DNA of 64,000 bases from Malacoraja senta (GCA_038087875.1 CM075991.1:6758001-6822000); one strand, 5' to 3'; counted from the stretch's first letter, positions 61,515 to 63,710 are shown. Notes: generated from the letters alone by a model not told the origin. Numbers and translations are program-made.

Positions 61515-62051
61515 TTATACTGGTCGATCCACTGCATACTGACAGGGGCTGAGGTTGGGTGCTGGGTTTTGCACCGGCCCGTAGCTGAAGGTCGAGGAGT
61601 GATGCTTGGCTCGGAGTCTCAGGCTGGCCAGGCTGGTGTTGCAGTTGTCCCGGTACACGTATGGACTCGAGCTAGATCCGTAGGGGCAAGGAGAGGCAGC
61701 GACCGCTGTGTTCAACGAAGGGTTGCCAAGGCTGTTCAAGTTATTCAAGCTTGTGCCAGGTAAAGCGGAAGGAACCATAGTCATGGAAGGGATAGAGTTG
61801 GGGGCGGAAAACATGGCTTGCGATGACAACGAGTTCACATTCATGGAATTGAAGAAGGAAAAACCTTTGGCGGAGATGGGATTGGTGCCGAGTCCTTTGG
61901 TGGCCCAATTATTGTATGAATACCCGGAGTACATGTCCTCGTAGGGTTGAACCAGCCCGTTGAACGGAGCTCCAAACCCAGTCTTACACAGTTCAGTTTG
62001 TTGGTGGCGCTCCCGCTTCCTCCACTTCGCTCTGCGATTTTTAAACCACAC
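61515..62051 (-). CDS. Pitx-family homeobox gene, last coding exon (helix 3 with K50, OAR domain, stop)
   Basis: ggacag|GTG TGG TTT AAA; [23 protein letters not shown]...[14 protein letters not shown]...[12 protein letters not shown] (TAA 61517-61515). Clearly Pitx and most Pitx3/Pitx2-like; paralog identity uncertain, so no symbol given. Confidence 0.95.
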
Positions 62052-62205
62052 CTGTCCAGACCAAAGCAAAAAGAGAGGTTAAATCACAATGCACAAATAG
62101 TTGGAGATGAAAAGAGAGTCAATAAGCCCTAAATCGTAGATAGACACAAAATGCTGGATTAACTCAGTGTGGTCAGGGCAGCATCTCTGGGGGAAATGAG
62201 TAGGT

Positions 62206-62233
62206 GACGTTTCGGGTCGAGACCCTTCTTCAG
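62206..62233 (-). ncRNA. Minimal hammerhead core, sense orientation in the last Pitx intron
   Basis: Minus strand reads CUGAAGAAGGGUCUCGACCCGAAACGUC. Confidence 0.65.
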
Positions 62234-62800
62234 ACATTTTAATAGACAGTGTTTTAATAGACAGTAGCTTTTGCAACATCGTTCCCCTGGATAAAGTATT
62301 GCAGCCGAATTTTGTGACACAAAATTGCAGATACATTTAACAGAATTATTCATTGCTGACACAATTTTGCAAGTTCATGCACATTCACGGTGCCCGAAGA
62401 AGTGTCCCGACCCGAAACGTCGCCTCTCCAGTTGCTGCCTGGCCCGCTGAGTTCCTCCAGCACTTTGCTCATTTTGTTTTGCTCAATATTCCAGCATCAT
62501 GCAGTCTTTTGTGTCTACATTCACGGCGCCGTAAAAAATAAAATAAAACCCTAGTTGCCAAACGTTTTCGTCCCGTTTACCCCTGGCACCTTTACTGGCA
62601 CATAACTATGTTATTTCATGCCTTCTATAATTCTGTTGTGCTGAAGCAAAGCAAGAATTTCATTGTCCTATCTGGGACACATGACAATAACCTCTTGTAT
62701 TTCACTTATTTGTCAACAACTAATGATGGACAGACACCGGTATGCCAGAACCAAACACATTCCGTCAATGAGAAAGAATGTGTACACATCCAGATCAACA

Positions 62801-62868
62801 CATTTACCCCCTGGGTTGGCGAAATTTACCCCCTGAGGTAAATTTACCCCAGGTTGGGAACCCTTGCC
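62801..62868. mobile_element. hAT-Charlie-like MITE end
   Basis: CAGGTTGGGAACCCTTG followed by CCCTAG, typical of Charlie-type termini and targets; internal AATTTACC palindrome. Confidence 0.45.
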
Positions 62869-63501
62869 CTAGTGTATTCAAACTGTTTACCAGGATGCAA
62901 TCGCGCGACCCTTTCTTCGACTGAAATTACGTAGAAAACTCAGTAATACGGCTTGAGGAACTGCGAGATTCGGGTTTGATAGGTTTTGGATTAAGTGATG
63001 CCTCTCATTGAATATCGTAACGGACGTCGGGGTAGTAAAACTGAGCCGAGGAGCCATCGCAAGTTCGCTGCACGGGTTTTGCAACCAGCCGATTGAACTC
63101 GATGATTTAGATCAGTTGAACTATTCGGAAGAAAGATCTCGACCTGAAACGGCACCTATTCCTTTTCTCCAGAGATGCCGCCTGACACGGTGAGTCACTC
63201 CAACGCTTTGTGACTGTCTTCAGATGATTGCAAAGATGGGTAGTTTGAATCATTTCCTCCGTTCGTATTTGTAACGAGACTAACGCGGAGCGATTTTGCA
63301 TTGAACTCAACCTGTTTGTGCTGAAAATACCATCACATTTAAATTGCAGTTATAAAGCTTAAATTACTTTTGAAGTAATTAGCAGCCCCGAACTAAAACA
63401 TTTTTCAAAAATCCAACTAAATTTGCAGTTTTGATTTTGCAGCTATGATTTTAAAAACCCTTAAAATCCACTTTTTAAGGTTTTTTAAGCGTGATATTTA
63501 C

Positions 63502-63710
63502 CCTGATCCTGGCCTCGGTAAGGTTTGTCCACACCGCTATTTCCTCTCGGGTGGACATGTCTGGATAGCGGTTCCTCTGGAAAGTCGCCTCCAGTTCTTG
63601 CAGCTGTTGGCTGGTGAAGTGTGTTCGTTGCCTCCGCTGCTTCTTTTTGGCGGAGTTGTCTTCGGAGCCCGAGTCATCTGATTTACACCGGCGGTGCTGC
63701 CCGCTCTCTC
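63502..63710 (-). CDS. Pitx-family homeobox gene, homeodomain exon (209 nt; coding frame not listed in the ORF track)
   Basis: Acceptor ttttttaattcccaccag|, phase 1. Translates [69 protein letters not shown], then |gtaaat donor at the canonical PRD-class intron position before VWFKN. Confidence 0.95.

Follow-up and report, generated by a model that had tools for sequence, protein, structure and literature searches.

A candidate fourth Pitx paralogue of jawed vertebrates, sister to Pitx3, next to AAK1 in the skate Malacoraja senta

In textbook accounts, the Pitx genes regulate left-right asymmetry and the development of the pituitary, eye, jaw, tooth, hindlimb and midbrain dopamine neurons, and the family is routinely given as three vertebrate genes. 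A Pitx gene located next to AAK1 in the skate Malacoraja senta raises the question of whether it is one of these three under another name or a fourth member of the family, as its preliminary description had proposed in naming it the fourth copy from the second round of whole-genome duplication (2R). Three Pitx genes in vertebrates is the count given in a 2021 amphioxus paper and the one still used in recent papers (PMC8377849; bioRxiv 10.1101/2025.08.26.672487), and a 2011 survey of genes lost in mammals discusses only the long mammalian Pitx3 branch and no fourth gene (PMC3296468). A full-text search of the open literature found no paper naming or describing the fourth paralogue, for which the working name N4 is used here, 'Pitx4' being the natural name.

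The gene and its surroundings in the window

The window, that is, the whole stretch of 64,000 nucleotides that was analysed (CM075991.1:6758001-6822000), contains the following features.

63502-63710, minus strand: Pitx exon 2, the second coding exon (translation and splice sites; Pfam Homeodomain)
62052-63501, minus strand: phase-0 intron between homeodomain residues 46 and 47 (gt...ag; exact exon join in the mRNA contig L006)
61515-62051, minus strand: exon 3, the last coding exon, with the stop codon at 61515-61517 (translation; Pfam OAR; Leucoraja comparison)
60304-61514, minus strand: 3' UTR, at least this far (nucleotides 571-2324 of L006 on window positions 62052-60304, 94.4%)
35380-35548, minus strand: coding exon 1 of AAK1 (...VVAEG), the downstream neighbour (open reading frame; best PDB matches all AAK1; ATG at 35548, AG/GTGAG donor after 35380)

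Exon 2 starts in phase 1 after an 'ag' acceptor, ends at a 'gt' donor, and encodes a Ser/Asp-rich linker followed by homeodomain residues 1-46, the last of them reading NLTEARIR. Exon 3 continues with homeodomain residues 47-60, RHQQTELCK, a Ser/Pro/Asn-rich region, the OAR motif and ...CQYAVDRPV before the stop codon. Translation returned the same coordinates and all the motifs quoted in the preliminary description, such as TEARIR and RERHQQTE. The Pfam Homeodomain profile (PF00046) matches exon 2 alone with an E-value of 2e-15 and the full-length orthologue P0001 with 4.7e-23, and the OAR profile (PF03826) scores 27.1 bits on exon 3 of the window, the cut-off being 20.1. Direct reading of the sequence (...RIRVWFKNRR...) shows that Lys50 of the homeodomain is kept, as in bicoid-type homeodomains.

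L006, a little skate mRNA contig of 2.3 kb, maps onto exactly exons 2 and 3 and then along the 3' UTR to at least position 60304, and its nucleotides 361-573 are 98% identical to exon 2. Mapping of little skate mRNA to the locus in Amblyraja shows that about 2.2 kb separate exon 2 from the first coding exon upstream of it, which in M. senta would thus fall beyond base 64000, outside the window. The earlier claim of an intact gene with canonical splice sites thus stands for exons 2 and 3, and 'intact' applies to these two only. The 247 residues encoded by both exons differ at one position from the Leucoraja erinacea protein P0001, named 'pituitary homeobox 3-like', and at two positions from the protein of Amblyraja radiata. 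Taken by itself, exon 3 has 99% identity to P0001.

The AAK1 exon is located downstream in the same orientation, and 25,967 bp separate it from the stop codon of the Pitx gene, in agreement with the spacing of about 26 kb given before. The only significant PDB matches of its open reading frame are human AAK1 chains (E 6e-6). The remaining part of the window is intron 1 of AAK1, which contains a LINE with endonuclease and reverse-transcriptase open reading frames, as well as a minisatellite.

Place of the gene among Pitx paralogues

One account of the gene is that it is the plain skate orthologue of Pitx3 (or Pitx2), to which an annotation pipeline gave a cautious name. In favour of this account are the automatic names 'pituitary homeobox 3-like' or '2-like', which NCBI uses as had been predicted. 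These names arise because overall similarity is misleading: the slowly evolving skate protein is as near to Pitx2 and Pitx3 (74% identity) as to N4 of the coelacanth Latimeria (73%), and its identity to reptile N4 proteins is 62-63%. In protein searches, close relatives named 'pituitary homeobox 3-like' were found in about 20 chondrichthyan species, chimaera included, and a distinct 'pituitary homeobox 3' is present in them as well. Leucoraja (P0186) and Amblyraja (P0193) each carry a separate Pitx3 on a contig other than that of N4, and in the little skate Pitx1, Pitx3 and N4 are distributed over three contigs, as distinguished by their lengths. By the same measure, in the basking shark (Cetorhinus) Pitx1, Pitx2, Pitx3 and N4 are on four contigs, of 144.6, 250.2, 31.5 and 97.1 Mb, respectively. 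Catshark N4 is found on a 24.9-Mb contig, apart from Pitx3 (P0189), which is located on a 30.8-Mb contig with a gene for a 1918-residue Sec7-domain (GBF1-type) protein head-to-head about 9 kb upstream. GBF1 was not found adjoining N4, whose downstream neighbour in the window is AAK1, and no gene is called within 10 kb upstream of the Amblyraja orthologue; what lies upstream of the M. senta gene itself falls outside the window. A genome with three Pitx genes only, this one grouping within Pitx3 or Pitx2 and GBF1 lying upstream of it, had been named as the outcome that would speak against a fourth copy; what was found are four Pitx genes in the basking shark, a clade of their own for the N4 sequences and a GBF1-type neighbour that stays with catshark Pitx3. 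The orthologue account is therefore refuted, and its probability is negligible.

Trees calculated by maximum likelihood under LG+C20, with 52 to 65 rows and invertebrate Pitx sequences as the outgroup, place the skate gene inside a vertebrate Pitx clade (99/93 in the 52-row tree) that is separate from starfish, annelid and crustacean Pitx. The N4 clade has a support of 100/99 in both the 52-row and the 65-row tree, and in the latter its 24 sequences, 12 chondrichthyan and 12 osteichthyan rows, follow the order of the species tree. Within the clade, chondrichthyans (97/91) stand apart from osteichthyans (100/99), a group made up of Latimeria, actinopterygians (99/96) and sauropsids (100/100). 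True Pitx3 forms a separate clade (100/98) that extends from chondrichthyans to mammals, Pitx2 likewise has its own clade with chondrichthyans included, and N4 and Pitx3 are sisters with a support of 98/90 to 98/92. Pitx1 and Pitx2 form the other pair, supported by 75/77 in the 52-row tree, by 97/90 in the bowfin-added tree and by 85/88 in the 65-row tree, where a lamprey gene falls inside it. The phylogenetic check that had been suggested thus puts the gene in a gnathostome-wide clade of its own beside Pitx3, not within Pitx3 or Pitx2, and the N4 duplication is older than the split between chondrichthyans and osteichthyans. Two lamprey/hagfish gene lineages have no stable placement across the trees, and any dating of this duplication relative to 1R and 2R is consequently tentative.

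Three alignment columns set N4 apart from every sampled Pitx1-3 and cyclostome sequence, and they are the very substitutions that the preliminary description had singled out. Position 45 of the homeodomain is Ile in 19 of 22 N4 proteins and Val in all 32 Pitx1-3 and all four cyclostome sequences; the residue right after the homeodomain is His in every N4 protein (22/22) and Asn or Ser in 32/32 Pitx1-3; and an Arg in the OAR motif (18/21) replaces the Lys of all 32 Pitx1-3 sequences. The OAR motif itself is weak or missing in Latimeria, Tiliqua and bowfin N4 according to Pfam, being weaker or below the cut-off in Tiliqua and absent in Amia.

A further account holds that there is no fourth paralogue, and that the 'pitx3-like' genes are independent, fast-evolving, lineage-specific copies of Pitx3 brought together by long-branch attraction. 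The osteichthyan N4 branches are indeed long (Amia 1.18, gar 0.48, reptile stem 0.5-0.6), as this account would have it, and the equal distance of the skate protein from Pitx2, Pitx3 and Latimeria N4 described above also fits. When the bowfin (Amia) was added alone, resolution within N4 plus Pitx3 collapsed, and it was restored when gar, sturgeons and paddlefish were added. Nevertheless, AU tests reject both lineage-specific scenarios, namely the union of chondrichthyan N4 with chondrichthyan Pitx3 (p 0.001) and that of osteichthyan N4 with osteichthyan Pitx3 (p 2.8e-5); against a grouping of N4 with Pitx2 the rejection is weak (p 0.029). Moreover, the short-branched chondrichthyan members still join the clade at 100/99, the internal topology of N4 is that of the species tree, and the three shared derived residues are missing from all the sampled Pitx1-3 and cyclostome sequences. 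The explanation by lineage-specific copies is thus largely refuted and very improbable.

As a separate paralogue, N4 can be compared with each of the known genes. It shares with its sister Pitx3 the three coding exons, the intron at homeodomain residues 46/47, Lys50, the OAR motif and the ...AVDRPV C-terminus, and the skate Pitx3 and N4 proteins are 74% identical overall. In contrast to Pitx3, with which it is co-present in the same species, N4 has Ile45, His after the homeodomain and the OAR Arg, lacks the N-terminus of the type MDFNLL...SPALSLSDSGTP, and has AAK1 as its neighbour in the skate instead of GBF1. Pitx1 and Pitx2 resemble N4 in family, domains and predicted bicoid-type DNA specificity, and for each of them stomodeal or mandibular expression may be expected, but they are the other pair in the tree; Pitx1 is distinguished by Met30 and a ...CQYNS C-terminus, and Pitx2 by alternative N-termini.

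The distribution of N4 is wider than had been supposed. Cartilaginous fish have kept it, as claimed, but not exclusively. It is found in the turtles Dermochelys, Platysternon, Chrysemys, Emys, Terrapene, Trachemys and Malaclemys, in Latimeria, in the skink Tiliqua, which has both Pitx3 and N4, in another squamate-like sequence and, by a search seeded with a divergent match, in bowfin, gar, two sturgeons and paddlefish. NCBI labels these osteichthyan genes pitx3-like, pitx2-like or pitx3. Among the best 120 or 150 matches per search (of the 90%-identity cluster database and of cluster representatives), no N4-type sequence came from mammals, birds, amphibians, teleosts or lungfish, and a scan of about 430 retrieved proteins for the clade residues gave none from these groups. 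From these searches we infer a loss of N4 in mammals, amphibians and teleosts.

A truncated N4-like protein, P0273, falls beside the turtles in the 65-row tree and might be archosaurian. Three other candidate orthologues were rejected: P0121 from Acipenser sinensis is a Pitx3 model that contains exon 3 twice, P0245 from Danionella is a divergent Pitx1, and P0119 is a teleost Pitx3-like protein that has His after the homeodomain by convergence.

Origin of the fourth copy

Given a separate and ancient paralogue, the main rival to a whole-genome duplication is that N4 is an old small-scale duplicate of Pitx3, segmental or translocated, which arose before the gnathostome crown. The trees give only N4 as the sister of Pitx3 and as older than the chondrichthyan-osteichthyan split, and the immediate neighbours differ among species, being AAK1 in the skate and a SEC24-like gene in the paddlefish, both of which agree with a small-scale event. 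On the other hand, the symmetrical ((1,2),(3,4)) topology is the pattern expected of two duplication rounds, and N4 and Pitx3 are on different contigs in every species checked.

The neighbouring genes provide a further line of evidence. Paddlefish N4 is followed, 4.3 kb downstream, by a gene with a SEC24 trunk-domain exon (E-values of 1e-10 to 4e-7 against SEC24C, A, B and D), which is thus a SEC24 paralogue, not AAK1. A counterpart of this exon was found neither in the window nor in the other N4 loci. A tblastn search with the skate AAK1 exon 1 gave no match in the collected N4 loci, paddlefish included, and neither a called gene nor AAK1 exon 1 was found in the 10-kb flanks of the Dermochelys, Tiliqua, Emys, Amblyraja and Callorhinchus loci. 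Comparison of the window with the N4 loci by blastn detected conservation of the two coding exons only and, at such sensitivity, no shared non-coding elements.

The only known paralogue of AAK1 is BMP2K, which lies on human 4q, the chromosome of PITX2, and human SEC24A, B and C map to 5q31, 4q25 and 10q22, positions that are close to PITX1, 2 and 3 or share their chromosome arms. That both families have other members on Pitx-bearing human chromosomes also argues against a small-scale origin. PITX1, 2 and 3 map to 5q31.1, 4q25 and 10q24.32, and the NKL paralogon is distributed over 2p/8p, 4p, 5q and 10q (PMC2211742). Genes of the 10q (Lbx1) member of the paralogon are reported to group with those of a fourth, 'Lbx4' member, and those of the other two members likewise pair (PMC2446394); provided that N4 sits in the fourth member, this pairing would parallel that of (Pitx3, N4) and (Pitx1, Pitx2).

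Taken as a whole, a small-scale origin seems unlikely, though it is the most serious of the alternatives. Of the earlier proposal of a fourth 2R copy, the separate ancient paralogue stands on the trees, the AU tests and the separate loci, and 2R is a likely source that is consistent with the topology and the neighbours. With high probability, the window contains the second and third exons of a functional fourth Pitx paralogue of gnathostomes, the sister of Pitx3 and a duplicate from before the gnathostome crown, most likely from 2R. A duplication before the separation of cartilaginous and bony vertebrates, with the second whole-genome duplication as its most likely source, would have given rise to the pairs (Pitx1, Pitx2) and (Pitx3, N4).

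Constraint, expression and meaning for the Pitx family

Pairwise dN/dS values, calculated over exons 2-3 or the whole coding sequence, indicate that N4 is maintained by selection. They are 0.03 and 0.10 between skates and 0.05 between skate and chimaera, as against 0.17-0.19 between the skink and turtles and 0.39 between two turtles. The suggested dN/dS check thus shows N4 to be under strong purifying selection in cartilaginous fish, with looser constraint in reptiles. The gene is also transcribed and spliced in the little skate, where the exact 281-residue isoform is an uninterrupted open reading frame in 24 assembled spliced RNA contigs (runs SRR132693xx).

The N4 protein would act as a transcription factor, with a paired-like homeodomain of the bicoid type (Lys50) and an OAR motif at the C-terminus. 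Bicoid-type homeodomains bind TAATCC-type sites, and because the N4 homeodomain is identical to those of Pitx2 and Pitx3 at 59 of 60 positions, Val45Ile being the sole difference, it is predicted to bind the same sites. What sets N4 apart from its paralogues would mainly be the place and time of its expression, together with its C-terminal regulatory region. The divergence of N4 is found in its N-terminus, in the stretch that follows the homeodomain and in the OAR motif, which would point to changed partners or regulation, and probably to a distinct expression domain.

Published data may already contain the expression of N4. In skate pharyngeal-arch tables, two Trinity genes have PITX3_XENLA as their best match, beside one PITX1 and one PITX2, and both of them are 30- to 90-fold higher in the mandibular than in the gill arch (PMC8476176, BioProject PRJNA686126). 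One of the two may be N4; alternatively, both could be fragments of one gene.

The N4 sequences are already public and mislabelled, and what is new is the recognition of a fourth Pitx branch. Alx3 (PMC3166657) and the losses described in PMC3296468 are examples of the same pattern among 'hidden' ohnologues that mammals have lost: an early genome duplicate with patchy retention, absent from the main model species and overlooked because of that absence. The history that we consider reasonably probable, with less confidence than the identity of the gene itself, is that of four ancestral vertebrate Pitx genes, with N4 ('Pitx4') under purifying selection in chimaeras, sharks, rays, sturgeons, paddlefish, gar, bowfin, coelacanth, turtles and squamates, and with independent losses of the gene in mammals, amphibians and teleosts, and perhaps in birds. 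N4 would have gone unrecognised because it is named pitx3-like or pitx2-like, and some of the published shark and skate 'pitx3' expression, in the mandibular arch and the successional dental lamina, may be that of N4.

A fourth ancient Pitx gene would change the reconstruction of sub-functionalisation after genome duplication, and the functions of Pitx1-3 in mouse, chick, frog and zebrafish may include roles taken over after the loss of N4. It would also add a marker gene for the fourth member of the Pitx-carrying paralogon. In sharks, skates, gar, sturgeon, turtles and lizards, Pitx3 and N4 are at risk of being conflated, whether in probes, in RNA-seq annotations or in orthology tables. Consequently, 'pitx3' annotations in non-model vertebrates should be used with caution, a point of relevance to evolutionary developmental studies of this family.

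Repeats and runs of N around AAK1 in the window

The first intron of AAK1, the neighbour lying downstream of the proposed fourth Pitx paralogue (N4), contains both a retrotransposon and a large minisatellite, and runs of N occur in the intergenic region between AAK1 and N4:

15818-18177, + strand, LINE-type retrotransposon ORFs, within AAK1 intron 1
33393-35250, large minisatellite in AAK1 intron 1, whose first repeats lie about 130 bp past the exon 1 donor
about 36230-36690 and 49700-49940, N runs (assembly gaps or masked stretches), AAK1-Pitx intergenic region

The LINE ORFs encode an Exo_endo_phos endonuclease (E 5.5e-9) followed by an RVT_1 reverse transcriptase (E 7e-39). 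The minisatellite is built of units of about 36, 105 and 117 bp with matches of 60-93%, and it gives rise to spurious long Ser/Leu/Pro-rich ORFs on the minus strand.

N4 surroundings in paddlefish and turtles

The positions of the paddlefish neighbour and of two turtle N4 loci are as follows:

L016:20241-25979 (Polyodon spathula, CM030280.1), same strand as N4, SEC24-type neighbour of paddlefish N4, 4.3 kb downstream
L016:24282-24488, + strand, exon matching the SEC24 trunk domain
CM051431.1:144.70-144.73 Mb, Emys orbicularis N4 locus (L005)
CM019960.2:14.52-14.56 Mb, Dermochelys N4 locus (L001)

Against the paddlefish trunk exon, SEC24C, A, B and D score E values of 1e-10 to 4e-7, with no one of them clearly closest. 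The gene adjoining N4 may thus represent a SEC24 ohnologue in linkage with the putative fourth Pitx gene. In emydid turtles N4 genes lie mid-contig, on contigs of about 283-300 Mb, whereas the leatherback gene is close to the end of a 16.5-Mb chromosome, a contrast that suggests either that a microchromosome has fused or that the assemblies differ.

Aberrant and truncated protein models

Two proteins retrieved in the Pitx searches are gene-model artefacts: P0121 (Acipenser sinensis, 513 aa) is a Pitx3 model whose last exon is tandemly duplicated, whereas in P0234 (234 aa, squamate-like), a model of N4 type, exon 2 is translated after exon 3. P0273 (148 aa) is a truncated N4-type protein that bears the turtle-like motifs KKKLRRQRTHF and KKERHLQTELC and is placed beside turtles in the tree; similarity fades soon past the homeodomain, and the protein could be a partial or decaying archosaur copy.

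Pitx3 and possibly N4 in published expression data

In little skate pharyngeal arch RNA-seq (supplementary files 2, 5, 7 and 9; PMC8476176), PITX3_XENLA is the best match for DN131341_c1_g2 and also for DN115723_c2_g1, a different Trinity gene. Each shows strong mandibular-arch enrichment, with a logFC of about 5-6.5, and PITX1 and PITX2 are listed as separate genes beside them. One of the two may be N4. In the catshark, a preprint on tooth regeneration (bioRxiv 10.1101/2025.08.26.672487) describes the successional dental lamina as strongly expressing 'pitx3', whereas the dentition was pitx3-negative in an earlier study. The catshark annotation carries both pitx3 and pitx3-like, the latter a name often borne by N4 genes, and, speculatively, these two dental results might concern different genes.
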